Assembly: GCA_024704765.1 (NCBI GenBank)
Contig: JAKMXF010000333.1
Coordinates: forward strand, 1-64,000
Direction of reading: 5' to 3'
From: Oopsacas minuta
Lineage: Eukaryota > Animalia > Porifera
Length of the DNA stretch: 64,000 nucleotides
Positions within the stretch are counted from its first letter, which is position 1. Each line of letters starts with the position of its first letter. A program made the position numbers and the translations under genes. Of this stretch, positions 10,352 to 46,048 are shown piece after piece. The notes beneath the pieces were generated by a model. The model had not been told where the DNA came from. It was given only the letters and a program-made list of their open reading frames with translations, and did not search any database.

Positions 10352-12620
10352 ATGGCATCAGCAATTCATGTATCAGATCATATTCCATCTTCATTCCAGA
10401 ATTTGCAAAAGAGATTGGATCAATTCAGAGAAGCAGCTATGAATGATTTAGCTTTGAATATCTCTTATGTTAGTTTATTTTGGCCAATTAATGTCTTGGA
10501 AGATATTATTGACAATATGTGTATTTTTGAACAACAGAACAATTCTATTCAAAAGAACACTGAATTTCATTTGGAATTGAATAAATTTGCAGATAGTCTT
10601 GAAGATCCTTGGGGTATAGCGATCGACTCTGCTAATGATCTTGTTTATATTACTGAGAGATATTTTGATAAAGTTAGGATATTCTGTAGATGTTATGGAA
10701 CATGTATTGGCTGTATTGAAGGGGAAAAATTACAATTTCCAGAGAATATTATTCTAAAACACATTTCTGTAATTGTACAGTGCAGTAAATCAATTCATAA
10801 ATCGATTCATTAACTCTTAATACAGAATTAACCATACTTTCTGATTCATTATTGGCTGGTTTATGTACAGATGAGTTACACATGTATGTAGGAGATTACT
10901 ACAATGTGAGTCTAGTGGTACTGAGTATGAATTTAGAAGAAGAGAGGAGAATAACTCTCAAAGGTGAATACTGCAAAGCTAATGAAACTCTGATAAAGTC
11001 CATCTCATTGGTTCAAAATGAGTTTTAAATTTTGTTTGTAAATACAGATTACCCTCTACAAGCCTTTTCAATTGAGGGTATCCTCACAAGAACAGTTATA
11101 CCTTTACAATTATTGAAGTTTCCTCGCTGCTTCTCTCTCGATCAACAGTTAAACGTTATAATAGGAGGTGTAGATGACGTGAAGATATTCTCGAATGAAG
11201 GGAAATACAAAACTAAGTTTGGGAGGTTTTCTGATGCGAGGGGCACTCGAAAAGTTTTGCCGTTTGATATGAAACCATTAATCTGTCGGATATTTTTCCG
11301 CATCCATCTTTTCAGACATATTTTATTACTCTACTTTGAAACTTTCATTCATTTATCTCTTCTACTTTCATACATTAGATAATTTTAGTATACATGGCTT
11401 CTAAAATATCTCAATCTACATCAGATCTCACAAAACGTGATTTTCGAGGAACGATTTGATCTTATTCAAACTACAGAAGACAAGAGTAGAAATCTATGAA
11501 TCTTTACAGGAACATTTCCCGGATCTAGCTACAGTTGAACGATGGTACAGGGAATTTATTCACGGAAACTTTGTTCTTGTAGATGCTCCTCGTTCAGGAA
11601 GACCGAATATTTTACATAATGAAGAAAATGTTAACGAAATGCTAGATCTAATTACTAAAGATCCTCATACTACGTACGCTCAGTTGGAGTATGAAACCGA
11701 GTTATCATCGGGGACAATTAATATCATTTTGCACAAAGAGCTTTGTGTCAGGAAGTTGTGTGCCCGATGGATCGCCCATTCTTTGAACTTACAGCGAAAC
11801 ATATCCCGCATAGACTTTTGCAAAATTATGCTCAAAAGGTTTGCTAATGGAAGTTCAAGAGCTGTTTCTGAGATCCTTACAGGTGATGAGACATGGATAT
11901 ACCATTATGATCCAGAAACAAAGCGAATGTCAAAGGAGTGGGTTGAAGAAGATGCCCTACCTCCAACCAAAGTACGGAGGGCTAGATCTGTTGGGAACAA
12001 ATGTGGGCGATTTTTTTCAGATCTAGTGGGTTTGTCGAAGTTGTTGCTCTCGAGGATAGAAAGACTGTTACTGCCGACTGGTACACTACAGTGTGCCTAC
12101 CCAAAGTCATCACAGCAATTGAGTCACAGCGGGAGAAGACAGGCATTAGAGGAATTCTTCTTCATCATGATAATGCATCATCGCATACGGCAATCAGAAC
12201 TCGTGAGTTTTTGGAAAATTCTGGACTCAAAACATTACCTCACCCACCCTACAGTCCTGATTTAGCCCCTTGCGACTTCTGGTTGTTCCCTAGACTCAAA
12301 GATTAATTACGTGGGAGGAGATTTTCGACTAATGAGGAGTTGAGAGGGGCACTTTTCCAAGTGATCGGAGACATACCCAAAGAAGAGTGGAAAAAATGTT
12401 TTGATAATTGGTTTACCAGAATGAAAAAATGTATAGATTGTCAGAGAGAGTATTTTGAAAAAATGTAATAGTCAATTTTATTATTACTATCTGATATGTC
12501 GGTCAACGTCAAAACTTTTCGAGTGCCCTTCGTATATTTGGCTTAGCAGTAGATGAGTTAGGGTCTATTATTACTGTATAACGAAGATCCCCTGTGATAC
12601 AAGAATTTAAAATAGTTTAA
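10352..12620 (+). pseudogene. NHL-repeat pseudogene interrupted by a mariner insertion
   Basis: LEDPWGIAIDSANDLVYITE; FPRCFSLDQQLNVIIGG..VKIFSNEGKY before the mariner; IFGLAVDELGSIITV*RRSPVIQEF resumes after 12534. Stops and frameshifts are present. Confidence 0.75.
11237..12532 (+). mobile_element. Mariner (DD34D) element, defective
   Basis: TIRs CGA(G/A)GGGCACTCGAAAAGTTTTG; flanks TG (left) and TA (right). GDETW, HDNASSH and SPDLAPCDFW are split over ORFs 11456-12265 and 12001-12306, with a frameshift and a stop. Confidence 0.93.
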
Positions 12621-12785
12621 TTAATATTTCACTGACCTATATTTTCTATCTCGATTGCTGTCTGATGATTTGTTTATTTAGTCTGTTAGTGTTAGTGTTT
12701 GTTTGATTTTGAAAATTTACATTTTGTCGCTACTCAATTGTGAATCCATCTCTCATTTACCTGAGTATGTTTTCTATTAGTTGTG

Positions 12786-15700
12786 ATGTCATTCCCAGAA
12801 CTATTCGAGTTTGTAGAGTTGCTGGAGATAACTCGTCCACCAGACCCCCACTTTTTTCACTCACAGACAGAGACCGAGGAGACTCATGATGAAGAAGACA
12901 CTCCCCCCTCAGACCCCCCAGACAGCAGCAAGTCCCTATTAGAGGGGGTACGTCAGGACATAATGCGTGTCTGTTTGAAGGACTACGGAGAGATGAGTGT
13001 TCTGGTGTTATACTGCAGGAATGGACATCTATTCTACAGACTCAGTCACAGACAGAGACCTACCAAGTTTAGAATTGTAAGGTATTACAGTTAAATATTT
13101 AATTATACGTTACCTACTGTACTTTAATACTTAGTATTTGCTGTTGTTGGCTTTTGGATAATATCTATACTATTAAATCTCAATTTGTGTGTCTGTCTGT
13201 CACGCTCCCATATAGAAAACATATAGGTTCAGTTCATAAAGTCCAGAACCAAATATTACACAACATAACAACAACAAACAACATCATACTGAAGTAATTG
13301 AGTATGCTGGGTCCAAATATGATATTGTAAACAACATTTCATAAATATTTGTTCACTTTTAGGTACATAAAGTAGGCAGATTTAAAGCTAATGTCAGTAT
13401 CATGTTTGGAACTGTTAAGATTATGAGTTTAAGTACTCGAGGGCCGTAGGCCCGAGTGCGGACACTAAGTGTTCGCAATCGCGTAACGCGAGCAAGCGAA
13501 GCGCGCTAGTATTAGTTAAAATACATGGGTTATGTATATTACGACTATCCATGTCAGTAAACATGAGTACAATGTAATTTTGAATCATGGTATCATCGTA
13601 TAGTACAGGGTGTAACGAAAGTGTTGATACCCTAGATACCTCATTAAAACTTAGAATATATTTGAGTTATTCGAAATATTATCGGTTTATATATGAACCA
13701 TTTCGTTCTAATACAATTCTTATACGTTCCGGCATGCTAGCTACTAAATTCTCTAAAATGCTTGGGCTAATGTCTCTCCATGCTGATTTGACTGTTTCTA
13801 TTAGCTGTTCACACCTTGTGATTTGGCCCTCTTCATTAACCTTCTCTTTCACTATTCCCCAAAGGTTTTCAATAGGGTTTAAGTCAGGGGAGTTCCCAGG
13901 CCATTCAATCTTACGCCAGAAAGCATTTAAATGATCTTGACACCACTTCTGCGTTGCATTGGCCGTGTGTGCCGGTGCACCATCTTGCATGAAGATGAAT
14001 TCAGACATATTTTCCAACATTGGCCGCTCCAAAACCGATCCATTATTTCGACAACGGTGAACTGCCTCCATACAAGTCTTGGCCAAAATTTGATTAATGT
14101 AGTATGCACTATTTATTGATTGCCCTTGAGGGATTATATGCAGTTCTGAAAGTGCCTGATGTGACATCATGCCCCACACATGAATCTTTGCTGGAAACTT
14201 AACTGAAAATACCGAAGGAACATCTTGCTTATTCTTTGCCCAAACCCGATTATTTTGTTTGTTTGGCGTTGCAAAGAGCTGGAAGGGAGACTCATCTGAC
14301 CAGAGAACTTTTTTCCAGTCGTTAACTGTCCAATATTGATGCTTCCGAGCAAAATTCAGACGATCTTGGATGTTCTTTTGGGATAACCGAGGTATTTCTT
14401 GCCTTTTGAAAGACCTAACACCCACAGATTCGGTCAAATGACGATACACACACATATGAGATACAGGATTGCCTCTATTCTTCAATCTCTGTGCAAGTTT
14501 TCTTGTGGATTGCCTGCATTTACCGAGTGACTTGGAAATAACAATTTTATCCGCCCGTTTCAAAATAGGAGGCCTCCCTGAACGAGGTTTAGTCACTAAT
14601 GAACTACCTTTTTTATACAAACTAGACCATCGTTTCACCGAAGAGATTGAAACATTCAAGTCTTGGGCCACTTTCTTCTGTGTGAGCCCTGCATCTAGCA
14701 TGCACATAGCTCGAGAATGAAGCAAGATTCCATGATCACGGACATCCATTAATACGAAATAATGTAACGATGCTAAAATTGGAAAAAAATTCAAATATTT
14801 GAATAATATAAGTAATTAATGTAATCAGAAATAATCTAAAGTACTATAACTATATTTAAGAAAAGTATAGGAAACAAACTCTGTATGGTTCATTAATATT
14901 TAAGATTTTCATAGGAAAATAAAAGGTATCAACACTTTCGTTACACCCTGTATAAGTATAATGTCGTATATGCGTTTTAGATGGTTTCAGGGCTGTTGGA
15001 TATGTGACATGTGTCTTAGTCCTGACAGTCACTGGTTACTGGTGGCCTGTAGTCACGGCATGCTCAAGATACTCTCTGTACTTCCAATACTATTTGATAA
15101 CTATCTATCTGATGACGTGTTAGAGACACGAGACATTGACGTTATAATCAATCTCAGGTAATGCACTTTTTAATGGGAGATTATAATTTAGTTCATTCAT
15201 TTTGTCATATATTTCTCTTGTATTAGAAACTCAAATACACTGGAACTTTGTTTATACGAACACCAGCGGAAGGTCAAATATGTCTGCATTAACCTGAATT
15301 CGTATTAACCGGAGTAATACCAATTGAATAACCATTGTAGGGACCTGATTTAGTGTAAATATTTGTTCATCTTAGCCATATATGCATATTAACCGTGTTC
15401 ATATTAACGAAGTTTCGCTGTATATTATTTTTACTGTTATAGTTCGTTAAATAAGGAAAGTTCCTTATTATTTCAGAATTGGATTCAATACCGAGTGCCT
15501 TATGATATGATTTAATTGAAATTATGTTACATTCAGGTCTTACGGTTGTCCTACCTGTGTAGTCTGGTGGAGTGCTAGGAATGCAAGTAATTTCGGGATT
15601 ATCGGGTTTCAGAAAGGTACAATAGTAATCGTTGATATGAATAATAAAGAAATACAGAAGGTTATAGAACTGGGATCAGAATATACTCCAAGAGAATTCC

Positions 15701-18700
15701 AGTTAGAACGGAAGCACCACAACTCATCAACTAGTCTATTCATATTAACCACATGTAATATTCATTTCTGGTGTCTTCTAGAGACTGCTGAAGAGGAAGG
15801 ACTTATTGGTACACTCAACAACGGTAAGTACCAGGGATATAGTTAAAGTCCTGCTTATATAATTAGTTATATTGGCTAGTGTGTAGGAGCTAGCAGTAAG
15901 TCTCGTGAATGTAGCAGCGATGAACAAATTGATTATTTAAATAGACAAGAATCTATTTCTAATATTCTACAAAAGTCCAGCTCAGATACAGAATTCTCTC
16001 CTCAAAGAATTTTAATGCCTAAAGATTCTTATAAACTTTATCCTTACAGACTCAATCGTAAGTCTTATATTGCACTGCTGGATTCAAGCACCAACAAACT
16101 CTTACTCTGTCAAGACATAGACCTGCTCTCTCAGGTTAGATATTAACATATTACTAATTAGAGGGGTGTGGCTCATCCTACACCTATCACATGCCCTATT
16201 GTTGCTCTAGCTAAGCTGTTCCCAACCTGGGGTTTATGGACCCTTAGTGGTCTACGGACGACAATAGGGGACTAAGGGTCGACAGGATCTCAAATTTGTA
16301 TTGCAGTCTATAGGAGGTGGCCACAGAATGTGTTAAAATTAGTATAGGGGTCCTCGGGTGAAAACGTTTGGGAACTGCTGCCTTAGCTAAAGCCAATTAC
16401 AGGCAGTACAACTGATATACATATATCATTTAAGAATTCGCATTAAGTGCATTTCAAGTATGCACGCACACCTTATATATCATAGTAACATGGCTCGAGG
16501 CCTCTAGTCCTTCCAATCATAGAAATTCCTCTACAGTGGAATCGCCTAATAGCAAATCGCGTTTTGTAAGAATTTCGTTGCTAATACTTGACTTTGGCTA
16601 TTATGCGAACTACAGTAGAGCACGTACCCTGGATAAGACGTACTTCGGCTTAGTACGTACTAAATTTTATGAACCAAAATTCATTATTACATAGGATTCT
16701 ATGTAAATACAACTCGGTTAGTACGTACATTCGGATAGTATGTACATTTTAGACTTCCCGAGGGGGTACGTCTTATCCGAGTTCTACTGTATTTTCCATC
16801 AAAACAGCACTCTATGTCCATGAAAAAAGTAGGAGATTTAGCTAATTGCTAATACAAGTTTTCCATTTTATTCTACCCCTACCTTATCCTTGTCCCCTCT
16901 ACTATTGTAGTTAAAATATATATTCAGTTTAATATTTTAGAAAATCTCAGAACAGTACAAGTAAACTAAAAAATAGTACCAAATTTCTATTTCAGTATAA
17001 GACATTGTAAATCTCAAAATATGCTCGGTGCTTCAGTTCTCTCTTTATTTCGTTAATTATTCTGTTGGGATAGTAGCTTTATCTCATTAATTGCCTTCTC
17101 CAGGACAACTTCTGTTTTCTCTTCTTTTTTACAATCAAGTACTTTTCTTAGTTTATCCAATCCAGCTTGTTCAGCGTCATCCAAGTAATTATCCTCACTG
17201 TTTCCTTTTTGTCTATCCATTTTGTGATTAGAGTTGTTGCGTGTTGAGTTTTCTATGAATTGTTTCCAAAATACAATTCTTCGCGAATACTTATAGTTTT
17301 CATGATTATCCGCTTACACAGCTTAATGATTTGTATTTAATTGGTTATCTGCAGGTGTTTAAACCTGTTCCCTTTTTCTATATAATATTCGTATAATTTG
17401 TCATTTCTGATTGCAGGTGTTCCCACCTGTCTCTTTATTCAATTTATCATTTTAATGCAGGTGTTCAAACCTGAATTTTGATTTAAACATTCCAATTCAC
17501 ATGAATTTCCCGATAATTCCTGAAATATAACTATAACCATCTATTACTAGATTTATGTAATTGGAATTTAATGTTTCAAAACTACGTAAATTGTGTTATA
17601 ATTTATAAATTAAATTGAATTCAGAACTTTATGACAAAACATTATTGATATTATTATTCAGACCCTACGGGAGCAATTTTATTGATCAGGCCATGTATTT
17701 GAGTATTATGTGATGCTATCATGCTGCTGAACTAATTACAAATTTCTCCCGAACAATATTCACTTGGGAATTATTGTTGTCCCATATTCTCTTAACGCTT
17801 CCTACTAAACTGACTTGCTTTCGATACTTAAGGGAAAGAGAATATTCACGCTGTACTTTATAGTAACTTGAACGATCCTGGGGGCTCACATATTTATTTT
17901 ATATTAGCTCTATGGGACTATAACCAGACGAGGGGGCTCGAAGGCTCCCAGCCACCCCTTGGTTCTGCACCTATGCCTCCAACCCTTAATTATTTAGGAA
18001 TTTATCTCTTTACAAGAATTAATTAAATTTTGTTCATGCTTATTAAGGAAGTAATAATATTCCTAATCAACCAACCTATTATATTGTCTTTACCAAAGTA
18101 TTCTTTCTTTAGCCTCTACTAGAGTATGCTCTTCCTAAACGAACTTATGACTTCTTGCTGGCTAACAACATATTGTATACGCTATCATCAAGGGGGGATA
18201 ACATGTATCTCAGTGTACTAAGTGCTCACAAGTGTTCTCTCCTTGCCAGGAGGGAGCAACAAGACATTAGCTCAGCTCTCATCTATCAAATCATGCTTCC
18301 TTCTCACGAAAGAGTTAGGAAGATATTCCCTATCTTAGCCCAGCCTCTAATCGTTAATAAAGACTATGAAACTACTACATTTATTCAATGTCTTGTAGTT
18401 ACACGGTATGTTCCCAATTAATACATTCAATACTGATAATATAATTTAGTGATGTATATTTAGTTACAAAGTATACCAATGCAAACAGCTGCTAGCTCCT
18501 GAAACATTGTTCTTGCAGCTAGCATCACATGAGAACACTATACGCAAGGCAGACAAACTAGGTATTACTTTACAGCTGGATATCTGTGTTTTGTATGAGA
18601 GAAGTTCTGAATATCATCTTGAGCAGGGAAACTACTCACTAGCTTTAGACTTCTATAAACTCGCTAAGACTAGTCCCAACAAGATAGCTTCAAGTCTATC

Positions 18701-21700: not shown

Positions 21701-24700
21701 AACTAATTATTGATGGTATTGTTGTTGTCTTTTCTGTTGCTGTTGGTGTTATTGGTTCTGTTGAGTTTATTTGTGTATTATTTCGCGACTTTTCACAGAA
21801 TTCTCCACTATAACCGAATACACAACTACATGTACCATTTGATAGACAGGTACCGCTGTTCTGGCACTCATACAAACATTCCTTTGACTCACAATTCTCA
21901 CCATAGTAACCCTCCTCACATTCACTTCCATTCCTACATGAGTTGTAGCAATTCTCACACTGTAATCCTGTGAATCCTGTAACACACTGACATGCCCCCA
22001 ATCTACACACTCCACCATTTAGACATAATTCTGTACACTGACATTGTCCTGTTTCTGTTCTGCAGTATCCCGGAGACTCACAGTCTGTGTCCCTTTTACA
22101 TTCCTCACATTTTAACCCCCTCACATATATACATGACTGTACACTAACGTTAAAACTACACTCAACCAATCTGGTAGCATTCTGGTTGTAACAGTATATA
22201 TCAGTTATACTCTCTAGCTCAATTCCCTCATACCAATCCCTCATGTATATCTTGGTCACCCCTATATAGCCCAGCTGTTTACACGTTATTTTGGCTTCAG
22301 TCTCTCCCCAACCTGAATCACACACGTATCTCCATTCCATTTCACCAATTGAGTTGTTAGTGCATAACTGTAGATAATTTTCTTTATTTCTCCAACTCAC
22401 TGGACCTCTCCACCATCTGATGTCTCCTTCCCTCTCACAAGGATCTACCATTGCATTGCATACCATTATCAATGCAAGTATAAATATACAAAATATCTCC
22501 ATTAATCAATTCGAATATATTATTTTCCAATTACTAATACAACTATTTATGCTATACTTGTATAGAATAATTCTACAATCACGTATAGCACATACCACAT
22601 CTTGTTTATATCTTGTTGAGAGTACAATTATATCCTTGCATAAGTAATAATTCACAGAACTCTACCATTAATTAGAATACTTTTCCAATTTATAATTGAT
22701 TAATACTTGATTAATCATACATATTTTGGCCAGTTTATTATGTGTTTCTTATCAACACTAATTAATTACCACAGATTCTCTGAAAGTACAATTTTATTAC
22801 ATTACTAATGGATATGTCATATACGTAATATTTTATTAATATATTGTTCATAAAATCTCAATCACAGGCATATGTAAATATGTATAGGAAGTGGGAAGAT
22901 GTTACGATGGCCCCCAAACTAGAAAGTTCGAGGCCCTATCTGTCTGTGAACTCCTGGAGAGTGTCCCACGACTCTTTCTCTCTTAGGATCTGCCACACTT
23001 CACGTCTGTAAATATACATACATAGACCAAATATAATGACTCCAATATACATCGTTTGCTATGCTCTCAATTTAATTTAGATTTGCAGACTTGCTTGCTA
23101 CACTATGTCACGGAGCATTCCTACAACACATGCAGTTATTCTCTATATTCCATCTCATGCTCAAGTATTCTGAAACTTCCCATCTTATCCTATCTGCCAT
23201 CAGAGACAGAATGCATCTCTTCTCAGTCTCAGATCTTCTAATGTTATCTGTCATGTTTGATCCAAGTCAGGACTTCATTAAGCATTTAGTACAGCAGTCT
23301 CAAAGGTCGAGATTTGTACCAGGGAGAGGATTACAGCACTCTGCTTCTATGGACTCTCTCAACCAGTTAACATTGGGATGGAATGTATCTGTTTCTGATA
23401 GTACATACTCTCCTGTACGCACAAAATTAGGGATTGATCTAGCTGATGGAAGTGAATCTCAGAGAGAAGTTCGTCCTCAATCTTACTTTGAGATGTTTAT
23501 CGAATCACTCTTATGGCTCAACCAGAAGAGATTGCAGGTACTATTTAGAATTATAAGATAGATGTTATCCAATTGTATCCAATTTCCTTAATCTTCAATC
23601 TTGGTAGAAAATACTAATTTCGCATAAATTGTTAGAAAATATTTGTTTCAGAATGCAGTCCGACATTTTATTCCACGCATTCTTATTTCATGTATTCCAC
23701 TAGTCAATGGTAAATCCCGTCAACAATACAAGGAGTGGCACACTAATTATTTGTACGTCTAATTCAATAAGAATATTTCAAAATTTTGATTTCCAGTTAA
23801 CTTCCAAAAATGTATTCATTTAGGATAATACTTCATCATTTCTGCACAATGAACTCTTCATCCAGAATACAAGCAAGCTCTTATCTAATTTTCTAAAATT
23901 GAATGAAACTGAAACAAACTCCGGAATACAGGTATCTTGTGGAAGCAGTCATGCCGGTTACCTCCTACATAACCAAGTGTTCATGTGGACAACCTCTGTG
24001 GATCACGTACTCAGTCCTAGCTCTTTTATAGCAGAAGATATGCATCCCCTCACTGTACCCCTCTTGTCCTTCTTGCATATTAAAGTCCTGGAGATATCCT
24101 GTGGAATGGAGCACTCATTGGTACGTACATCTTACGGTGTGTACGCATGGGGAGACAATAGATGTGGTCAGCTGGGTGTGGGAGATAGGAACAAGAGACA
24201 GTTACCTACGGTTATAGATTCATTATCTAGTAAACAGATTATAGCTATTGCTTGTGGAGAAGCTCACTCACTGATGTTAGATAGCGTTAATAGGGTACAT
24301 GTATTTGGTGACAATAGATACGGTCAGCTAGGAATAGGTACTAAGGATCCTTATCAAACTATCCCCTTCATCCTCCCGTTACCTGTCTCTATTGTCCAGG
24401 CGTGTGGTGGTTCTATGCACTCAGTATTGCTTTCAGCTGATGGAGTCGTGTATGCTATGGGGAGCAATTATTACGGACAGCTGGGCGTGGAGGGACTGGA
24501 GGAGTCTAGCGAGCCTGTTAGAGTAGAGATATTAACAGAGTATAGAGTATTGGCTATAGCATCTGGTACACACACCTGTGTTGCTTGTGGACGAAATACA
24601 CAGCTGTGGTTATGGGGTAAAAACATTGGCAATCAGGAAATAGATTCAGAAGTAGAACAGATAGAACAGAGCAAGTCTGCTCTCATAACTCTTGATATAG

Positions 24701-26073
24701 ATTTGAAAGTTGGAGATCAGCTTAAAGAAGTAGCTGTTGGGATCAGTCACTGTCTGCTATTAACAAAGAACGGATTTATCCTGTCTTGGGGATCAAATGA
24801 ATACGGACAGTGCGGAGTAGGTACTTATTCTCATCAGCAGGAGCCTGAGATACTCCCTATCAATCTAACAGGTGTTAGGTTCATTTCTATAAGTGCTCAC
24901 ATGAATATCAGCGCTGCTATAGACTCTCAGAATAGATGCTTTGTATGGGGGAATATATTTCCTTACTCAGTAACTCCCAGTACTTCTCTAACATCCGAGG
25001 CTACACTGTGTGTATCTCCCTCTGTATGTTCTAACCTACCCTCCCTCATCCATCATATTCAGTCTGAGTGGGATATATCTATCCTATCAGAATCACATAA
25101 TGAAGTTGATGAGTTGAATGAACGCATTTCTGATTTCCCTGACTTCTCCTGTTTAGGCTCTATCTCTTACGGGAGTGAAGCTCTGGAATCTGCTCTGAAG
25201 GAGCTCTACGGCCTCTACTCATCATCTCGTATCAGCAGACTATGTCACTCTATGAACAACCTACAGGCTTCAGCTGTACTGATGGAGATGAGAGGAGACA
25301 TCCCACGAGCTCTTGAGTTCAAATTTAGACATCTTGTCCAGACGACTACTCAACAAGAGTTACTCCCTAGACTAACTGAACTATTGTATATTCATCTAGA
25401 TAGTCTACTCAGTCAGAACCAAGGAGCTCATACTATACGAGCTAGCTTCCTGAATCAAGGTATTCTCCTGATTAGATCTGCTCACAGTATATTCCTAGCA
25501 CACTCTCTCCCTCTTGAGAGTTTAGAAGAAGTGTTTGTATCTCGTATTGAAGGCTTAGCATATCCTCTTTACTTATTTATTAAGGATATAATAGAGAATG
25601 GAGATTCTCCTCCCTTCAGCTTATCATTATGTACACAGATTATTCTAATTACTGCACATAACATAGCGGAGGGACATCCTGACCCTCTGTTAGTACTCTC
25701 CTCTAACGAGCATACCTCTATAACCCGTCCTGTCAATGAGGGCACTATATGGGGACACATAATACACAATCTTACCAAGGATTTGGATAGCAGTGAATCT
25801 TTCCAGATAGATTATAACAGAGTAAAATCATTCTATACCTCAGCAACTGATCATGAGATGGTCCTGTTCTCGTGCGGACACTTCTATTCAGGTCACGAAT
25901 TCAACAAGACAGTACTGCCTAAATTTGAAAATCTCATAAGTCAGAATCTTCCTAGTTTTGGTAAGCAGACGACTCAACGTATTCTACAGCATTACTGGAA
26001 TGAAGATAAGTTTAATATTGGTTGTCCAGCTTGTGTGTTTATCAATTTGCAGCAAATAGCAACAAATAACTGA
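12786..26073 (+). CDS. 10-exon, about 1507-aa protein: WD-like N-terminus, helical middle, RCC1 repeats, C-terminal Cys/His motif (claret/GLO-4-like Rab-GEF candidate)
   Basis: Exons 12786-13081, 14981-15157, 15537-15586, 15668-15823, 15887-16134, 18113-18405, 18464-18810, 19696-19945, 23081-23537 and 23824-26073. All introns are GT-AG, phases match, and the total of 4524 nt is open. The last exon has RCC1 repeats (YAWGDNRCGQLG, VFGDNRYGQLG, SWGSNEYGQCG) and FSCGH...GCPAC. The family name is recall-based and less certain than the structure. Confidence 0.8.
13164..13509 (+). mobile_element. Non-autonomous Helitron-like element
   Basis: A|TCTATACTATTAAA 5' end; GC hairpins (GGGCC-GTA-GGCCC; TGCGGACAC-TAA-GTGTTCGCA) near a CTAG|T 3' end; no TSD. 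Confidence 0.65.
13606..14950 (-). mobile_element. Intact Tc1-like DD37E transposon
   Basis: Perfect 26-bp TIR CAGGGTGTAACGAAAGTGTTGATACC, TA on both sides, and an uninterrupted 356-aa transposase (ATG 14749 to 13679). Motifs WSDES, MQDGAPAH and SPDLNPIE, with 37 residues between the second D and the E. Confidence 0.95.
16613..16789. mobile_element. MITE with TA target site (CAGTAGA...TCTACTG)
   Basis: Inverted ends containing GGATAAGACGTAC and TA flanks; a related end lies at about 8080-8117. Confidence 0.7.
17053..17220 (-). CDS. Possible 55-aa helix-loop-helix miniprotein nested in intron 5
   Basis: MDRQKGNSEDNYLDDAEQAGLDKLRKVLDCKKEEKTEVVLEKAINEIKLLSQQNN*; below the 60-aa cutoff of the ORF track. 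Confidence 0.35.
   Translation of the reverse strand: MDRQKGNSEDNYLDDAEQAGLDKLRKVLDCKKEEKTEVVLEKAINEIKLLSQQNN
18863..19147. mobile_element. pogo/Tigger-like MITE
   Basis: Ends CCGTATTTCTCCGAATAAGCGCC and GGCGCTTATTCGGGGAAATACGG; TA on the left; internal partial repeat of the end at about 19068. Confidence 0.7.
20050..20950 (+). repeat. Diverged direct repeat of about 125 bp (20050-20180 and 20828-20950)
   Basis: Both copies read TAACCGATTA(T/C)GGTC...GATCG(T/C)AATGAAAA...TTTTAACCAATTCCCG... Confidence 0.6.
21180..22502 (-). CDS. Intronless type I membrane protein: signal peptide, SRCR, EGF repeats, S/T stalk, TM, Tyr-motif tail; nested in intron 8 of the RCC1 gene
   Basis: EGDIR...WRYVCDSGWGETEAKITCKQLGY (SRCR); CLNGGVC...CVTGFTGLQC and CQNSGTC...CVFGYSGEFC (EGF); hydrophobic TM; tail motifs YESL, YYQI, YTEM and YVPM. 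Confidence 0.9.
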   Translation of the reverse strand: MEIFCIFILALIMVCNAMVDPCEREGDIRWWRGPVSWRNKENYLQLCTNNSIGEMEWRYVCDSGWGETEAKITCKQLGYIGVTKIYMRDWYEGIELESITDIYCYNQNATRLVECSFNVSVQSCIYVRGLKCEECKRDTDCESPGYCRTETGQCQCTELCLNGGVCRLGACQCVTGFTGLQCENCYNSCRNGSECEEGYYGENCESKECLYECQNSGTCLSNGTCSCVFGYSGEFCEKSRNNTQINSTEPITPTATEKTTTIPSIISSTNTSITWSSKLDNTTDTPYTTPSMGINLLIISGIDMYTAGWIMMALLAVIILVLCCCHFFILVPFLVMKGRERRSRLAIISTHEPFYESLQTVASYYQIQTDHPQNNLSMNWRKSGVSMNTSGDYTEMKLVYDNRDIMGEEVIKKINREMREKKRLLFENSNDLYVPMNPVN

Positions 26074-28779: not shown

Positions 28780-29125
28780 AACTATAATAGATTAAGGGCT
28801 GATACTTTCAGGATATATGGACAATTACTGTGCGGTGTGCATTGAGGGTCACAATTTTTGATCTGACACAATTTGCCACTTTTGTGCCAGTTAATAATTC
28901 TTCCCATAGGAATTGTATTAGATTTTTGGATACTATAGAATACTACGAACAAAATCCTAGTAGGAGGCTATACACAGCATAGGATGATATTAAATTGATT
29001 CAACTTAGTACACAAACGCTAGACTATGAAAAAATAATTATTGACACAATAGACACAAATTGCGTGCCGTCATAAACCAAGTAAAACTTGAACCGGAATA
29101 ACTCACCCACGATAACAGCTAAAGT
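28780..29125 (+). repeat. Dispersed repeat, related to 44080-44430 and 60880-61200
   Basis: Shared AAACTATAATAG(A/G)(T/A)TAAG(G/T)GCTGA...GACAATTAC...GACACAATAGAC...TAAAACTTGAA. Confidence 0.7.
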
Positions 29126-30644
29126 AATACTTCCAATAGGTGAAATGTAGTATAGATTAGGATAGACACCTTGGCCACTATAACTATGACGTCACCATAG
29201 TGGAGGTGGTGATGACAAAATTTTCAAAAATTGAGATTTCGAAATTCGACAAAACATGAGTCTTTGGACACATTCATAAAATCTTGTATATAAAATTACA
29301 AACTGTGTCGACAGCTTAACCTATCGATTAAATTTGTCTAAAGTGGCACTAGCAATTGGAGGCATTATACAATGAAATTTAACAAAATACACATAGTGGT
29401 TCCAGTTACTAGTGCCCACTCTAAAGAATTTAATCAATAGACAAAGCTGTCGGCACAGGCTGTTACATTATATTTGTTACGATTGAGACAAATATTTTTC
29501 AATTTTATCAGACATTGATTTACTACTTTACTCGTTAATTATGTTACCGCTTTATAGAATAAACCATTAATAAAGCAATTCCAAAACCATTATATTTTAA
29601 ATTAAAACTCGGCTATCTTCATTTCGCATTATGTCATATCTCGGAAATTGTCATAAAAATGTGGTCAGATTTTGGCTCTTTCCCAGATAATATCATAAAA
29701 TTAAGCGCGAATACCAGTTTATTTGATGGAAACACGGGAAAATATACAGTGCATTAGTGAACGGTGTGTACAAAGTCGTACTGAAAACTTAGCATGTACA
29801 AAGTTACTTTCTGTACGTAAATATCGAGATTGTACCAACATCCGACGGTTATTATCCTTGTACCATGAAGGTTTCAGTCCTAATCTATTAATGCTTTGGC
29901 TGTGCACGGGCTACGAAGGAAAATATAAATATAGGCCAGTTGTATAAAACGGGAGCCGCGGCACACTTGTGTAGACATGGGGAATTGTATTTATAAATGT
30001 AATTTCTGTAATTCATTAGTTTTCAAGTAATTGAAAAGTAATCGTAATTGGATGACATAAATGTAATTTCAAATTTGTAATTGTCCCTGAGATTGTAAAT
30101 AGCCGCTAATGTATTTGCACATTGAGGCCAATATTTATACATAAATGGCATATTTCTAGGAAATTTTGACACTGCAGTATTACTAAAGTCGAATTCAATA
30201 TTGACAGGTGTGCTTCATAATTATAGATGAAATGAGTGTGTCATAGATTGAAAACGGTTTAGACACATTGATATAGGCAGTGATATCAATACTGGCCCAT
30301 CTATCATTGTATAGTCAGCACAGAGAACACAAAAATTATGTGCTTCGGAAAGCGGAATGACGTATTGAATATATGTATTGCAATAAACAGTGTAGAGATC
30401 AATTAAGTGAAAACATACAGTCCTATCAAATTGTTCATCACAACAATTCGAGAATTCGATATGATTTTCTGGACAAATAGAGACGTGCCAGAAGACCCAA
30501 TGTAAAGGAATGAATGAAAATCAAGCAAAACAAATATATACGTGATAGGACTAGTTAATATCAATTCAAAACAAAGGATCAATACAAATAATCTAGCTAT
30601 ATCTACAAAGGTAGACTGGAATACAAAGTCCGTTAGAGAAGAAG

Positions 30645-32735
30645 TCATAAACTTTCAAAATCATGGAATTCTATCATTTCCCAATAATATTTATACACGA
30701 TTTGAAAGTTAGGTAATCCTGTTTTGAGAACATCTATAGACTTTGACATATTTTTATTAAAGATACCCAGATTGTTACACTTGAGAGAGTTTGCATACTC
30801 TGCTCCAGCTAAAAGAGTTGCATTTGGATTAGAATTATAGACAACTTTATTAATATATTTCATGTAATCTTTACTTTTGTTATAAGATTGTTTCAATTTA
30901 TGAATCAGATCATCTTTCAGGTTACCACCAATGAAATAGAGACAAAGATTAACATTAGTAAGTCCAGCAGTTTCAACGATTTGTTGTATCAATATGAACA
31001 CATGTTCTGTCTCTACACTCAACTCAAACTCTTTACAAGCAATAGAATTACAATTACTGACTAAAGATATCCAACCAGACTCATAACCGTAGTTAACAAC
31101 AATACCGTTAGCAGTTCCATTACCAACACATACAGCTACACTTTGTGGTGTACAACGGATACATGGGTGTTGATAAGTAAAATGCAATAAATTACTTATC
31201 TTCAATCCTACGGAAGCACAATATAGAGGGTTAACAAGACAAAGCACTGAGGTTGTGCGTGGATATATTTTACAGTCAATATATAATCCATATAATATTT
31301 CTGGCAACAGAGTGATGTCATCAATCGAACCACGTTTAACTACTTGTGTACATTGATTTCCATATCCAGCCAATGCATTTTCCCCACAAAACCAACGATC
31401 ATAATTACCCCTCCTCATGTGTATATCATAAATACCAGATACACGAGCTACTACAGAGCGCATTTCACTGGTGTGAACCACTCCACTCTTATTGAGGACA
31501 TTAGCACATCTAATGTTATAACCACCCATATCGATAACAGCACATCTATCAGCAGATCGCATTCTAATTCTAGCTTTGAAGTTTCCATACCAATCAATTA
31601 CGAGTGGATTAATCGGAGTTTCGCTAAGATAGATATCCACCTTATGACCATGTGACCATCTTCTCTTATACAATTCAAACCACAACCCTCCATCCATCGC
31701 AAGATCATACCAAACCTTACAAACTTCCATACAAATTACAACATCCTTAGCACTCAAGTAGCTGAATATTTTGATATACAATTCGTATGGGAGTGTTAAT
31801 CTTTTCAATTCTCCGTAGTATTCATCACTAACACTACGTTGTGCTGCCATCTGCAAGCTAATAGCTCGTAAATATGTGTCTGTGAATCCTTCCTGATCAC
31901 CAACCTTCTCCAACAGGTTAGACTTACGATACAGAGTCAGGGCTGTGTTATAGGACTCAGATTGTGAGTACTTTAACGGATTGGGTATCATTTGTGTATC
32001 CATTCGACGAAACATCATTTCAGTTCTTAGAAGATACTTGACACCTTTCAATACAGGTGTACCCTCATGGAATGTATCATGATTGAATATCAGACCCATA
32101 CCAACAGATGGTTTAACCTTGTGATAGACATGCTTCCTATCCTTCTCATCTATAAATTTGGTTTCCCCACCTGTGTAATCAGTATTCAGGTATATCAGTA
32201 CTGTGTATACTGATGATTCATCCTCACGAGGTACCCAGGGTCCATCAAAATGAGGTGTGAAGTGTCCTCCACTTGTATATTTCATTATTTTAATACACTC
32301 ATTCAATCTTATTGGTCTCCAAGTACCCTCGTTACCAAATCCGATTGGTCTGATACGGATTACATCGTGACGTGTCAAGAGAGGTTGGATTCTAGCGAAA
32401 ATAGCATCTGCCATCTGATGTGATAGAGTCAGGATTCTGTCATTAACTCTATAATAGGTTGGGAATTTGTTTGATAAATTACCAAAACCAACCTTTTCAC
32501 ATTCTCGGATGAAAAACTTACATTCTTTCGGAGTTAGCAAATGTTTCAGAATGAAGCTATGACAGTTTGGAATGTCTGACAATTCTTTCCTATTGATATT
32601 TGAATGTGTGGCTTTGAGTGACTCACAGAAAGGTAGCGGGATAAAATTCTCCTTCGCTGTCTCCAGCATTGGCTTTGTGGTTATTTCCTTTTCATATTGA
32701 CATTCTTGAAAATTATTAATTAAGGCTGTAGCCAT
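30645..32735 (-). CDS. Intronless 696-aa fusion: prolyl-4-hydroxylase-like 2OG-Fe(II) oxygenase + F-box + truncated actin-like fold
   Basis: PHFDG (HxD), VLIYLNTDYTGGETKF, FHEG (distal His) and GVKYLLR; F-box LPYELYIKIFSYLSAKDVVICMEVCKVW; actin-like AVIDMGG, VVKRGSIDD, GIVVNYG, YFIGG and LLAGA. First ATG at 32735. Confidence 0.85.
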   Translation of the reverse strand: MATALINNFQECQYEKEITTKPMLETAKENFIPLPFCESLKATHSNINRKELSDIPNCHSFILKHLLTPKECKFFIRECEKVGFGNLSNKFPTYYRVNDRILTLSHQMADAIFARIQPLLTRHDVIRIRPIGFGNEGTWRPIRLNECIKIMKYTSGGHFTPHFDGPWVPREDESSVYTVLIYLNTDYTGGETKFIDEKDRKHVYHKVKPSVGMGLIFNHDTFHEGTPVLKGVKYLLRTEMMFRRMDTQMIPNPLKYSQSESYNTALTLYRKSNLLEKVGDQEGFTDTYLRAISLQMAAQRSVSDEYYGELKRLTLPYELYIKIFSYLSAKDVVICMEVCKVWYDLAMDGGLWFELYKRRWSHGHKVDIYLSETPINPLVIDWYGNFKARIRMRSADRCAVIDMGGYNIRCANVLNKSGVVHTSEMRSVVARVSGIYDIHMRRGNYDRWFCGENALAGYGNQCTQVVKRGSIDDITLLPEILYGLYIDCKIYPRTTSVLCLVNPLYCASVGLKISNLLHFTYQHPCIRCTPQSVAVCVGNGTANGIVVNYGYESGWISLVSNCNSIACKEFELSVETEHVFILIQQIVETAGLTNVNLCLYFIGGNLKDDLIHKLKQSYNKSKDYMKYINKVVYNSNPNATLLAGAEYANSLKCNNLGIFNKNMSKSIDVLKTGLPNFQIVYKYYWEMIEFHDFESL

Positions 32736-34368
32736 TTCTAATTGTATTAACAATTCATAAATAATCTATTTAGCTTAATCGGTATACCGGTTAAAATTTG
32801 ACACAACTAGAAAGAATTTTCCTTAGCTAAGCAGGATTTGTTAAAATTGGAGGCCAAAAAATTCTGCTTAATTGAGCCAATTTTGACAATTTTTCTAATT
32901 TATTCATATTAGTGATCATTGCCAACATGATTTCACGGAAGGCACCAATCTATCTTCAAATTCTATATTTTGGGTGGGTATGTCTACACCATACAGTGAT
33001 TATAATCTTTTAGGGGTCTGCGACTGATTAAATTGAGAAACGCTGCTATATCAAGTCGTTAATAGAAATTCCCCGGTTAATTCGAGACAATATGCCTGGA
33101 ACCGATGTGTCCAAATAATGGACTTTACTGTACGAAACAACTGTCTAATATCACTAGTGAATATTTCAGGGATTGTAATTTGGCGAGAGCACCTATAATA
33201 ATATTCATGTATGTATATATATGGTTGTGGGATATTTGATAATTGAGAACTACAATTTTATTTAATTTGGGAAATTAGATACTATACATTTATAACGAGC
33301 TTTTGGCTCTTCGTATTGCGCCTCGAAGTATCCATTATTCTCCAAATTGACGGCCCCTTTGAGAATTATAATATAGATATATTTAGAACTATGTAATTCC
33401 AAAATATACTTATATGGCATATTTATAATTGAATTATTTTGTAAGATCAACCCCCTTTGTAGCGATTGAGCGCAAGTATTTACGTAAATTTTGAGATTTT
33501 GCTAATTTATTTACTTTTATTCATAAAAACAACAATAAATGGTACAATTGCAAAATCTTACACCACCCAACTTTTTTCATGAGGTCAACATCCGTATATG
33601 TACCATTTAAGAACTCGTTGAGAGAAGTTGATAGAGCTAAAGAACTCGAAAATCGGATGAAAATTGACAAAGTTATGAAAATTTACTTCCTAAGCCAAAT
33701 CCTATGGGGAAAATTGTATTACTCACTATAGTCAAATTCTATTGATTATACATTACAACCACTATACAAGAATACGCATACTGTTGACACTGAGGTCATG
33801 CACCCTTGAAACTCTACTCTTTCATGCTCATTCGTTGCTATTCAGTGTATTTCACTGCTGGTAACTCTTGTTACAATTATGCGAACGCCAACGGATGATC
33901 AAGATGTGTTCGTATTAACTGGAATAATATCAATTGAATAAGCTTCAGTGAATCAGTTTTGGAAATTTATTCTATTCAAGGTAAGAACTTCAGATGTACC
34001 GTCTCCAACAGTATACTCATCTCAGTTGGAAGACTTGGACCATATTTCTTACCTTACTGAAGTTCGTAGCTCTTAACAGTTCCTCAATTCAAACCATTGT
34101 GTATACTTAGCAAGGCAGTAGCAAGCAGATTTCAATTGGTTAGACCGTAAGCTGACCATATACGAAATTTATGGAATTTGTGCGTTTGAAACCTGACCAA
34201 CGGGATCGTCTCCTACGGTCTTGTTGTGAATGATAAAATATTATTGCTTTTCTGCAAAGAGTAACATTAACGTAGCTATGCTAGATATCACATTACCATC
34301 TGTAGGCAACACAAGTGTACTGGAGTAGTATAACTAAAATATTAGCGAACTGAATTTCTATCTACTAA

Positions 34369-35665
34369 ATGACATCTAAGCTAGTTCCACTACCTGACAA
34401 CTGAGAAGACCTACTCTATGTTAAGAAAGGTAAATCTATCCATTGTGGGTATAAGAGGGACTATTTAGCTAGGAACCTGACTGGGATGGAGGAAGGATTT
34501 GTTGTTTGTCAGATTTGCTCTGGAATAATGCGGGAAGCTTCTGTGTGGGAAGGCGAGATAACTTGTTTAGTTTGTAGCGAATCTCAAGACTTAAACCCTG
34601 TTAGAATAGTACATAATGCTGTCAATCAATTGGAAGTTAAATGTCCTATCCTCAGAGATTGTACTTGGAATGGGAAATTATCAGAAGCTGAAAACCATTT
34701 AGATAATTGCAATAGCTTTAAATTACAATGTGTAGATTGTGAAGTAACAATTATTAGAGGTGAATATGATAACCATAAAGTGAATACGTGTATTTTACGT
34801 GAAATAAAATGTGAATACTGTTTTAAACAAGGAAAGGCTAAATATCAGGAAATACATAATGAAGTGTGCAATGAGTATCCTATTTCTTGTCCTAATAATT
34901 GTGGAGAAAAGTTTCCAAGAAGTAAATTATCTCAACACAAATCTAAATGTAAATATGAAAAGATTAGCTGTCCCTACACACAGTATGGATGTGAAGCAAA
35001 GTCTATGTTAAGAAGAGATCTCCTAGCTCACAAGAAGGAGTTCTATATAGAACATACAGACATGAGTCTAACTAGAATCAAAATACTAGAGGGTGAGAAT
35101 TCGCACTTGAAGAAGGAACTAAGTGAAATGGCAATGGAGGGAAAGATAATGAAACAACTTGATGGAGTTGAGTGGGAAATAAAGTATGTTTATAAACTAC
35201 CTAATAATGACAAGCTAGTAGGACCGATAGTCTATATTAACAACTACAAACTGGATAGTCTATATTAACAACTACAAACTGAGAATATTTCTCATCAAGG
35301 ACTCAATATTTTATAGAAATAAACTCCAATTCTGTCTAGAAAGGTTGCCTGGAGATTTTGACAGATATTTAGGGAGAGCCTACATAACTCAATACAGAGT
35401 TATTATTATCAATAAACAAGATATAACTAAATCATATTTAGATAATGAAATAATGGATTATGAGCTTTGTATCGGGAAATACAGTGAAAAGTTCGACTTA
35501 TCTCATTACCTTTATGAAGATTGTATTACTGCAGATAATTCCTTGTTTCTGAGATTCTACTTTGAAGTCAATTCTGAAAAGACTATGAAAGAATTGATGT
35601 CCTGTAACCAAGATATAAATAGACCCATCTATCTAAGTCTAAGACGATCTGATCCTTTTTATTAG
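34369..35665 (+). pseudogene. TRAF-like gene (degenerate RING, TRAF zinc fingers, coiled coil, MATH-like), disrupted
   Basis: CQICSGIMRE, CPILRDCTWNGKLSEAENHLDNC, CEYC, CPNNCGE and CPYTQYGC. In-frame TGA at codon 12 from ATG 34369; a 28-bp tandem duplication at 35226-35281 frameshifts the MATH region. Confidence 0.85.
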
Positions 35666-36095
35666 GCCACATTTGGAAAACATATTCCCTTTGGTTAACG
35701 TATTCCCAAACTAATAACAAAACATCATAAGCTTCAATAACATACCTTGAATAGTTCTATTAATGTATCTTGTCTATTCTAGTTAGCTTAATACATCTTT
35801 GGTTTTATTCGCATGTTATCTATAATATTTAATAATTCTTGTTGATCTGTCAATTCATTATCTGAGTAGATAATTTCCGTGTACGTAATACTTTTGATAA
35901 TGTAAAGTTCTGAGGGTTGATACAAGAGTGAGTGACTTGTTACTTTATTAGAGAAGATGCTTTCTCAGACTACAACTAATGAGTAAGAGTAGAGTTATAC
36001 TTCTATCAAATGATTCAACATTCCTACAGAACTATAAGTAACACACAATATTGTAGTATTAGGAATATCTAAATGAATTTGTATGTGATTATTGA

Positions 36096-38765: not shown

Positions 38766-39467
38766 ATGACTACTCCAGCGCCAGGTTCTCCTTGTGTGAT
38801 TTGTCTAGAACCAGATGTACAAGTTAGAGGCAGACTTAGCACGTGCAAACATATATTCTGTTTCTTCTGCATTTCCCAATGGGCCTTGGCTTCAAATACT
38901 TGTCCACTATGTAAATCTAAGTTTAGATGTATTTCCGAGTTGGTAGTTAGCACTGGAATTGTTCTGTCGAAGAAAAGAGTTGGCGAGAAATCTCAAGAAA
39001 TAGAGTCTGAATTTGATGAGTTAGATTTGAGTATTGATGACGTATCTGAGTTGAGGAATTCAATACGGAGTAAATACATGCGAGAGATTAACTCAATTGT
39101 ATATCAATCTGATTCTTCTGACGAAGACTTCAGCGAGTTTATTGTACCCGATCACTTTGATTCTGATAGCGAGAATTTTACCCCTCAGCTAGACTCGAAT
39201 ATTTTGGATGAAATTGAAGTGATTAGTGATTCATTTGATATGCAGGATTCATCTATTCCACAGGTGTTAACAAGTGTACAGTTAGAAGATAATCGAATTG
39301 TTTCAGAATATTTTCTACCAAATTCACGAAATGTAAACTCAAAGGCGGCTAAAGATCAGCCTAGAAACCATTTGAAGATTGGAAAGAAGGCGAAATGCCA
39401 TAAAATGGAAGAAGAAATTCTGGAGAATATTAGAAAATTTGGGAACACTGGCTGGATTTCGAAGTAA
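38766..39467 (+). CDS. C3HC4 RING-finger protein (PHRF1/SCAF11-type RING) with acidic disordered region
   Basis: CVIC...CKHIFCFFCISQWALASNTCPLCK followed by an acidic low-complexity tail; 233-aa single ORF. Confidence 0.8.
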   Translation: MTTPAPGSPCVICLEPDVQVRGRLSTCKHIFCFFCISQWALASNTCPLCKSKFRCISELVVSTGIVLSKKRVGEKSQEIESEFDELDLSIDDVSELRNSIRSKYMREINSIVYQSDSSDEDFSEFIVPDHFDSDSENFTPQLDSNILDEIEVISDSFDMQDSSIPQVLTSVQLEDNRIVSEYFLPNSRNVNSKAAKDQPRNHLKIGKKAKCHKMEEEILENIRKFGNTGWISK

Positions 39468-44724: not shown

Positions 44725-46048
44725 GGGTCTAGCACATTTGCGTACATCACACTTGCGTACAGTATGTTATTATTTGTTGAATTCAAACAAATTCATATAT
44801 ATATTTAATGATTAGGCCATGTAAAATAAAGTACTTGTTTCTCATCCACTTTTTTCTGCGAAATAGGGGCGGAAGGCGGCATTTTATTTTTATTTTTTTT
44901 TGCATAGCGTAATTTTACTAATTTATTTAAACTATCTCGTTAATACGAATTTCTGATAAGACGAACAATATTCGTACATAATCAGGTCCCTACAACCATA
45001 CTTCAATGGATATTACTCCGGTTTATGAGCTCCAGAAAGGTGAATAAATTTTAACCGTACGGTCCATTGGTGTTCGTATTAAGCTTACACTGTATATGGG
45101 AAAACGCGATTAATCTATAATTGTATATAATAATAATGATAAAAATAATAATAATAAAAATTTAGTGCACACCCCAGGGCTGATTTTTGCCATGCAGGGA
45201 GGGGTATTTAGGCCTGACTCGGACAGGTCTGAGTCTTGGACGAAAATTCACACCTGACGAAATTATGATGCCATTGCCACCTTTTTGTGCCATCGGCTAG
45301 CCAGATCTTTGACATGGTCAAAAATTCTATGTTCTCTTTATTTGCAAATATCACTATCCTATCGGGGCCAATGCCAGAGTCGTAGAATAGAAAATTCCTG
45401 TTAGAAAATGTCTTGATGTTTTCAGCGTCTAACTGAAGTTCTTCAAGAGATACTGGATTAGGTGGAGCAACACGTTGCCTTTTATACATCATTTTCAGGG
45501 CGTGTTGATTTGGAAGCAGAGACTTCGCAGATTCAGACAATAAACTGGTCATCTCTCCTATCGCAACGTGTGGATTGTCATTAGTTTCTCTCCCTCGCTT
45601 CCTCAATAAATCTTTCATGACTGTTACCTCATCTTTACCGTATTCCTGTGGGTGAGAATGTTTCCCAGACTTTTTGATGATTGTCTCATCAACGGAGTGT
45701 ATTCTAGCTTTACATCCTCGCACGTCACACCGCCACTCCTTTTTGATAGCTCCCCGATGGAAAATATACAAATATCCGTCGTAGGATAATTTGTTAGTCC
45801 CCTTTGAAGATTTGACTATTTGGAATGAAGTATCGCTATTGGCAGACATTAGATACTTGGTGATAAAATATCCAGCTCATCCAATGCATTTTATAGATCT
45901 CGAAATAATTTTGTAATTAGAGTTTATTTATCTGTGAAACCTTTAATTAACTTGTCAAATATACATTACATTGTACACAACTGTGATGTACGCAACTGTG
46001 AACATAAACATTGTACGCAAGTGTGATGTACGCAAATGTGCGGCTCCC
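44725..46048 (-). mobile_element. Mutator/MULE element with truncated FLYWCH-transposase
   Basis: TIRs GGG....GCACATTTGCGTACATCACACTTGCGTACA; 9-bp TSD ATTCCTTTT at 44716-24 and 46049-57. ORF 45208-45849 has YDGYLY..W.CDVRGCKAR...HSH and WLADGT (first catalytic D), then is cut by another repeat (also seen at about 26580). Confidence 0.9.

Follow-up and report, generated by a model that had tools for sequence, protein, structure and literature searches.

What a protein might do that joins, in one chain, an oxygen-dependent hydroxylase, an F-box and a domain with the fold of actin is the question raised by a gene of the glass sponge Oopsacas minuta. The gene lies in a 64,000-nucleotide stretch (contig JAKMXF010000333.1, positions 1 to 64,000), referred to below as the window, where its whole coding sequence occupies 30645..32735 on the minus strand as a single open reading frame (ORF) of 696 codons plus a stop. 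The protein is 696 aa long if the first ATG is taken as the start and 702 aa if an upstream TTG is used, and the GC content of the ORF equals that of its flanks. A first-pass annotation, made from the letters alone, had described an intronless fusion of a 2-oxoglutarate (2OG)/Fe(II) prolyl hydroxylase, an F-box and an actin-like fold. The intronless structure is supported by O. minuta LOD99_8647, which is 96% identical in nucleotide sequence and annotated as a single 2088-nt exon (locus L001, on contig JAKMXF010000339.1). The presence of three domains in one chain is borne out by Pfam, by family profiles and by structural comparison with Foldseek and VIA-align. That the gene is genuine, carries all three domains and belongs to a widespread family is almost certain.

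The N-terminal part of the chain (residues 20-305; 31821..32678, minus strand) is a P4H-type 2OG/Fe(II) dioxygenase domain, recognized by Pfam, an AlphaFold2 (AF2) model, Foldseek and a family profile. Its double-stranded beta-helix core lies at about residues 43-248, and a conserved helical hairpin comes after it at 255-298. Within the core, the Pfam family 2OG-FeII_Oxy_3 (PF13640) matches residues 149-235 with an E-value of 1.1e-11 and 46 bits (gathering score 27). The catalytic stretch (32037..32252, minus strand) carries the iron triad H162-x-D164...H223, beginning with the sequence H162-F163-D164, and the 2OG-binding lysine K233, located at +10 from the distal histidine. These ligands, already reported as intact in the first-pass annotation, are shared throughout the family: none of the 47 full-length relatives compared lacks H162, D164, H223 or K233. 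In an alignment of 116 N-terminal domains, R96, P130, H162, D164, L183, G212 and H223 are invariant, and K233 is found in more than 90%. The catalytic site is thus the most conserved part of the hydroxylase/F-box/actin family.

The relationship of this enzyme to known dioxygenases is defined by both sequence and fold. When a family profile of the N-terminal domain was compared with the PDB, it matched the P4H of Bacillus anthracis (BaP4H; 1.4e-15), Chlamydomonas P4H-1 (1e-11), human P4H-TM (5e-9) and a chlorella-virus collagen P4H (1.5e-8). K233 aligned to the lysine of the "GxKW/Y" strand of P4Hs, which in BaP4H reads "TKGEKW". The domain was refolded by AF2 with the 116-sequence alignment after the full-length model had proved poor in this region, and the new model reached a predicted local distance difference test (pLDDT) score of 92.3 and a predicted template modelling (pTM) score of 0.89. 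Foldseek placed Chlamydomonas P4H (3gze) first with this model, at E 2.5e-10, followed by 6tp5, 5c5t and 3itq; further solved matches were PKHD-type hydroxylases (PiuC) and lysyl hydroxylases, while the best matches among Swiss-Prot folds were Arabidopsis P4Hs and PKHD-type hydroxylases. The model thus agrees best with P4Hs that act on peptide substrates. Neither the PDB profile matches at E<=1 nor the top 50 fold matches included a PHD/EGLN or PhyA chain by name. Because the nearest neighbours in sequence and fold are P4Hs and PKHD-type enzymes, with no PHD/EGLN or PhyA among them, the domain is predicted to be a complete P4H-type enzyme and not a PhyA or PHD orthologue; PhyA orthology was rejected on these same neighbours. 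The hydroxylated residue is most likely proline, but it may also be lysine, aspartate or another residue.

Compared with Chlamydomonas P4H-1, BaP4H, the PBCV-1 enzyme vCPH and human P4H-TM, the sponge domain shares the fold and the HxD...H...K(+10) site, at only 16-19% identity. It has conserved segments of its own in which the known P4Hs differ, such as the "GFGNEGTW" loop at about residues 132-139, and its C-terminal helical hairpin resembles that of PKHD-type hydroxylases. Unlike the collagen-type P4Hs, the protein has no signal peptide or endoplasmic reticulum context and is fused to an F-box.

The second part comprises the F-box and a conserved linker (31560..31820, minus strand), delimited by Pfam, by sequence matches in the PDB and by two invariant tryptophans. 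The F-box itself spans residues 314-357 (31665-31796, minus strand), where Pfam F-box-like (PF12937) matches at E 1.2e-13 and 51.1 bits (gathering score 24.3), which confirms that the F-box is a clear one, as first described. The related model PF00646 matches at E 2.8e-8 and 33.8 bits (gathering score 20.5), and Pfam detects an F-box in 10 of 10 close relatives. Used alone as a query against PDB sequences, the window protein matches the F-boxes of FBXW8, FBXL5, KDM2A/B and SKP2. W352 and W382, the latter in the "DWY" motif of the linker, are kept in 47 of 47 relatives.

The third part, residues 393-667 (30735..31559, minus strand), is an actin-fold domain without subdomain 4, identified by profile, Foldseek, VIA-align and motif spacing. 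Pfam Actin is detected in 10 of 10 close relatives at E<0.01 (best 1.4e-8) and in wider relatives at values down to 9e-36, and a profile built from 62 C-terminal domains of the family matches actins at E 1.5e-44 over actin residues 6-357. Built on 10 sequences only, the full-length AF2 model has an overall pLDDT of 59.5 and reaches about 70-80 across residues 397-650. With this actin-like region Foldseek gives E 1e-11 to actins, and VIA-align superimposes 247 residues on actin 5-364 with a Z-score of 19.3 at 3.4 A, in agreement with the actin-like C-terminal fold proposed at the outset. Actin is likewise matched by the ESM Atlas model of this sequence, together with Arp4 and MreB, and a Swiss-Prot fold search with the C-terminal domain returns generic actins and Arp2. 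The domain is followed by a poorly conserved C-terminal tail (residues 668-696; 30648..30734, minus strand) modelled with low confidence, the full-length AF2 model falling below pLDDT 50 from residue 653 onward.

The nucleotide-site motifs of this domain are only partly preserved. The phosphate-1 loop DMGGYNIR (31509..31532, minus strand; D402, G404, R409) is near the actin pattern, and the C-terminal "GA..ANSL" strand-helix, equivalent to "WIGGSILASL" of actin, is retained. The phosphate-2 loop VVNYGYESG (31074..31100, minus strand) is degenerate, with N548 in place of actin Asp154 and E552 at the position of the second glycine. Across 47 relatives the aspartate column is occupied about equally often by S, D, W and N. 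The GG motif of the adenosine loop, G603-G604 (30924..30929, minus strand), lies 53 residues past the phosphate-2 glycine, G550. Like actin and nuclear actin-related proteins such as Arp4, the domain has the core of subdomains 1 and 3, part of subdomain 2, the phosphate-1 D-x-G and the GG loop, and it differs from actin in the missing subdomain 4 and in the residue replacing Asp154.

The same spacing can be followed through the family. In actin the distance from G156 to G301 is about 145 residues. It is 126-141 residues in many amoebozoan and Naegleria members of the family, 84 in two choanoflagellates, 56-60 in demosponges and 53 in glass sponges. Because the window protein has 53 residues where actin and the protist relatives have so many more, subdomain 4 is missing, and the series of about 140, 84 and 53 residues implies a stepwise loss along the lineage that led to sponges. 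The first-pass annotation had put this interval at about 45 aa, and the gap that it pointed to is real. The AF2 model of the C-terminal domain contains a beta-beta-beta-alpha-beta-alpha-beta-alpha core only, about 115 actin residues have no counterpart, and the nucleotide contacts normally supplied by subdomain 4 are absent from the domain as modelled and aligned. In actin, subdomain 4 also contributes longitudinal filament contacts. Nature thus supplies a graded series in which the use of a minimal actin fold can be probed. At the site where actin has subdomain 4, one relative (P0011, an 811-aa protein from a Logan contig) carries an inserted FYVE zinc finger, past the phosphate-2 loop and before the GG motif, as do two further relatives. 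Other relatives contain additional WW, WWE, ankyrin, Macro, NADAR or rhodanese domains.

The breadth of the family was established by running its profile with HMMER over all of 1.84 billion cluster representatives, 606 of which matched at E<=1e-30, a part of these through the oxygenase domain only. With hidden Markov models (HMMs) built from sponge sequences only, all three parts were found in 51 of 163 retrieved proteins, about 40 of these outside the sponge group, and oxygenase plus F-box in a further 58. Pfam Actin was also detected in 14 of the 61 proteins in which the sponge HMMs had left one or more of the three parts undetected. Named members include the choanoflagellates Choanoeca flexa and Salpingoeca infusionum; among Amoebozoa, Pellita, Physarum, Arcella, Pyxidicula and all dictyostelids sampled; the chytrid fungus Rhizophlyctis rosea; and the heterolobosean Naegleria lovaniensis. 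The demosponges Halichondria panicea and Ephydatia muelleri have members with 41-45% identity to the window protein. Dictyostelium cf. discoideum has two orthologues (P0167 and P0097), ACTFIZ_002477/ACTFIZ_002478, with consecutive locus tags on the same contig, both annotated as "hypothetical". No cnidarian, ctenophore or bilaterian name was found among the family-profile matches, which is not proof of absence, and among the taxon-labelled matches of a word-indexed search of data that include NCBI only sponges appeared.

The architecture, first regarded as unfamiliar from animals, is thus widespread among eukaryotes. The first-pass annotation had named an architecture both widespread and already characterized as grounds for refutation, and the searches gave no sign of the second half. 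All named members are annotated as "hypothetical", "Fe2OG dioxygenase domain-containing" or "F-box domain-containing", literature searches found no description of a P4H-type oxygenase with an F-box and an actin fold, and a Dictyostelium Skp1-interactome paper with one supplement makes no mention of an actin or P4H F-box protein. The window gene thus encodes a member of an ancient eukaryotic family of F-box proteins for which no published study was found, whereas single parts and two-part fusions are already known. Several relatives, from choanoflagellates, Physarum, Arcella and Pellita, come from transcriptome assemblies, and the family is therefore expressed elsewhere.

Two of these known fusions provide the closest precedents. 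The plant protein ARP8/SUSA2 resembles the window protein in having an F-box followed directly by a divergent actin fold, a parallel that the first reading had drawn and that the present comparison upholds; it differs in having no N-terminal dioxygenase and, judged by size, a full-size actin domain. By ESM Atlas feature similarity, plant F-box plus Actin clusters are nearest to the window protein (score 0.66-0.67, to be taken as a lead only). ARP8 is not among the top 30 Swiss-Prot fold matches of the C-terminal domain, and a profile of the F-box and actin parts returned only two of its own members. Arabidopsis SUSA2/ARP8 binds the Skp1 homologue ASK1 and stays functional after mutation of the predicted nucleotide-binding residues, for which reason its authors attribute substrate binding to the actin fold (PMC7562919). 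The same paper states that the F-box plus actin combination is confined to plants (PMC7562919), a statement that its occurrence in at least five other major lineages argues against. The second precedent is the combination of a non-haem Fe/2OG dioxygenase and an F-box in one chain, found in Dictyostelium JcdI/Fbxo13 and in mammalian KDM2A/KDM2B (FBXL11/10), the F-boxes of KDM2A/B being among the best PDB sequence matches to that of the window protein. JcdI and KDM2A/B differ in their JmjC domains and in leucine-rich repeats or other C-terminal parts, whereas the window protein places a P4H-type enzyme N-terminal to the F-box and has the actin fold as its third part. For JcdI/Fbxo13, in which the F-box accompanies an O2-limited dioxygenase, a stable Skp1 complex is described, and the protein is scarcer when the Skp1-bound share of it is larger (PMC9485057).

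On the basis of these two precedents, the window protein is tentatively proposed, at somewhat less than even confidence, to be a Skp1-docked, O2- and 2OG-dependent hydroxylase in which the actin fold would serve as a protein-binding module linked to ubiquitination. The F-box would dock the protein on Skp1, either within a Skp1-cullin-F-box (SCF) ligase or in a complex with Skp1 only. The stripped-down actin fold would act as a protein-binding scaffold, neither hydrolysing ATP nor forming filaments. The dioxygenase would then hydroxylate a residue, most likely a proline, on the partner held by the scaffold or elsewhere in the complex, in a manner dependent on O2 and 2OG. The oxygen or metabolic state of the cell would thereby be coupled to ubiquitination of the partner or of the enzyme itself.

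Such an activity would be of particular interest at the base of the animals. In sponges, key parts of the pathway that runs through hypoxia-inducible factor (HIF) have been reported missing, including orthologues of EGL9/PHD, and VHL was found in a few demosponges only (PMC5800844). Because sponges are reported to lack EGL9/PHD, an SCF-linked P4H is a sensible candidate for oxygen or 2OG sensing without HIF. The family, conserved from Naegleria and Amoebozoa to chytrids, choanoflagellates and sponges, is a candidate HIF-independent sensor of O2 or metabolites at the animal base. These hypotheses are open to genetics, since Dictyostelium discoideum has two tandem orthologues.

The principal alternative is that the protein is a Skp1-tethered enzyme and not a substrate receptor, acting mainly as a hydroxylase on targets unrelated to SCF. 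The prominence of the catalytic site as the best-conserved part of the family speaks for it, together with an actin domain that is highly variable, takes insertions such as FYVE and loses motifs. Two observations oppose this: several major eukaryotic groups have retained the order of F-box then actin, an argument for an F-box-linked role of the third domain, and the F-box plus actin pair of plant SUSA2 acts with SCF components. Overall, this reading, in which the F-box would just park the enzyme on Skp1 or else govern the turnover of the enzyme itself, a role proposed for Dictyostelium JcdI, is considered rather unlikely.

Going beyond a Skp1-docked hydroxylase with an actin-fold binding module, the whole family might be a one-chain oxygen switch that predates HIF and is independent of it. 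Such a switch would have been kept in sponges and choanoflagellates, which lack PHD-HIF-VHL, and its F-box plus actin half would be ancestral to plant ARP8/SUSA2. If this improbable scenario were true, the hydroxylase and the E3 receptor for the hydroxylated (or unhydroxylated) client would reside in the same protein.

An enzyme acting on Skp1 itself was suggested at first, on the model of PhyA: the F-box would dock the enzyme, which would hydroxylate Skp1 in cis. PhyA and PHD/EGLN do resemble the window protein in tying 2OG/Fe(II) prolyl-hydroxylase chemistry to a cullin-RING ligase (PhyA to Skp1 and SCF, PHD to HIF and VHL). They differ in being free-standing, without an F-box, and in not being the nearest subfamily by sequence or fold. 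The target proline of PhyA lies at the F-box-binding face of Skp1 and is not known to be conserved in animals. Having a Skp1-docking motif and a P4H-type active site within one chain would suit such a role, as would the reported lack of EGL9/PHD orthologues in sponges (PMC5800844). Against it, the nearest solved relatives of the N-terminal domain are collagen-type, algal, bacterial and viral P4Hs, P4H-TM and PKHD-type hydroxylases, and no PHD/EGLN or PhyA chain was named within the limits given above. Dictyostelids, moreover, carry members of the family besides PhyA, so that the two are not simple replacements of each other. Hydroxylation of Skp1 in cis is therefore regarded as quite improbable.

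Several observations weigh against the proposed function of this particular copy and against reading its architecture in detail. When the window protein is analysed alone, Pfam Actin matches residues 399-577 at E 1.3e-3 and 17.9 bits, under its gathering score of 27. The full-length AF2 model falls below pLDDT 50 at residues 279-325 and 344-363, in the F-box and linkers, and has a pTM of 0.39; the domain arrangement therefore cannot be read from it. Comparison with the closest paralogue gives a ratio of non-synonymous to synonymous differences per site (pN/pS) of 0.84, indistinguishable from neutral (Fisher p 0.57), although with only 77 differences this comparison has little power. In favour of the proposed function, the F-box and linker, 261 nt in length, show zero nucleotide differences from the same paralogue and are the sole such segment, the rest of the gene differing at 4.2% of sites. 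The chance of this at the mean rate of the gene is about 2e-5, which points to strong constraint or gene conversion, and the latter could equally be the cause. A further point against it is that the layout of sequencing reads over the gene cannot separate transcription from summed paralogue DNA.

The last point concerns five public runs that contain the stretch, of which the kind was guessed; none of the public runs is listed with "RNA" in its library description. Contig depth over the ORF is 150-1500x, compared with 50-70x in the flanks, that is 3-20 times the flanks. The raised-depth stretch coincides with 30578-32802, the segment common to the 96% paralogue, and depths of look-alike sequences are summed. 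Transcription of this copy is thus suggested as the likely, though not the sole, reading of these depths.

The closest database relative of the gene is LOD99_8647, with 92% amino-acid identity, and the next relatives are 64-67% identical and group with Oopsacas in trees. Nucleotides 30578-32802 of the window match L001 at 96%, and adjoining pieces match at 96-98% with different spacing. From these sequence comparisons the gene is read as a recent paralogue in a small glass-sponge gene family. In a broader view, window positions 9106-16015 together with 30578-32802 correspond to L001 2257-10155 in five blocks at 96-98%, and the distance from the F-box gene to the other blocks is about 1.2 kb in L001 and about 15 kb in the window. 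The layout suggests that a segment was recently duplicated and rearranged, or else that the assemblies differ.

Such a recent duplicate might be decaying and drifting toward a pseudogene within a multi-copy family. The 77 differences from the paralogue comprise 18.5 synonymous and 58.5 non-synonymous changes, and it is this pN/pS of 0.84, together with the highly divergent C-terminal tail (23 non-synonymous changes in the 36 codons of residues 661-696), that gives the idea its footing. By region, the oxygenase has a pN/pS of 0.59 and the actin core one of 0.65. All 696 codons are open, however, and the catalytic, F-box and actin-core motifs are intact and identical to those in the paralogues that are only 64-67% identical overall; copies 41-67% identical have likewise retained the reading frame and every key motif. 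Decay of this copy is held to be quite unlikely.

The descent of the family was examined in a careful maximum-likelihood tree of 47 full-length members and in a quick tree of 116 N-terminal domains. In the former, all sponge sequences form one clade (100/97), with demosponges and glass sponges as its two halves, and this clade is sister to the two choanoflagellates (92/60). In the quick tree, the sponges (88) group with choanoflagellates and P0014 (91). Because the family tree mirrors the species tree, the data fit vertical inheritance with loss in other animals, and not the acquisition from a protist that had been considered possible at first. Horizontal transfer from a protist into the sponge lineage, to which the single-exon structure and the predominance of protists among the relatives might lend some colour, is scarcely credible given the presence of the gene in both Hexactinellida and Demospongiae, its GC content and the sister position of sponges and choanoflagellates, and it was rejected on both trees.

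The neighbours of the gene within the window are ordinary genes of eukaryotic type, other ubiquitin- and signalling-type genes among them. Long single ORFs on the plus strand encode an NHL-repeat protein (6458-7720), an RCC1-like repeat protein (23899-26073), a TRAF-type zinc finger (34486-35268) and a RING finger (38766-39467), and one on the minus strand encodes a FLYWCH zinc finger (45208-45849). An intact-looking Tc1/mariner-type transposase with DDE_3 and HTH_Tnp_Tc3_2 domains lies at 13679-14794 on the minus strand. NHL-repeat genes also flank the L001 paralogue.

Between the three-domain gene and the TRAF-like ORF lies a further element, at 33286-33867. In all runs its summed depth is extremely high, up to about 157,000 compared with 50-70 in the flanks, and many contigs break at 33315 and 33540. 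An Rfam search of positions 29000-36000, this element included, gave no match. The element is probably a very high-copy repeat, or else a highly expressed small RNA or short interspersed nuclear element, and a 228-nt piece of it (33307-33532) recurs in L001 of O. minuta at 87% identity.

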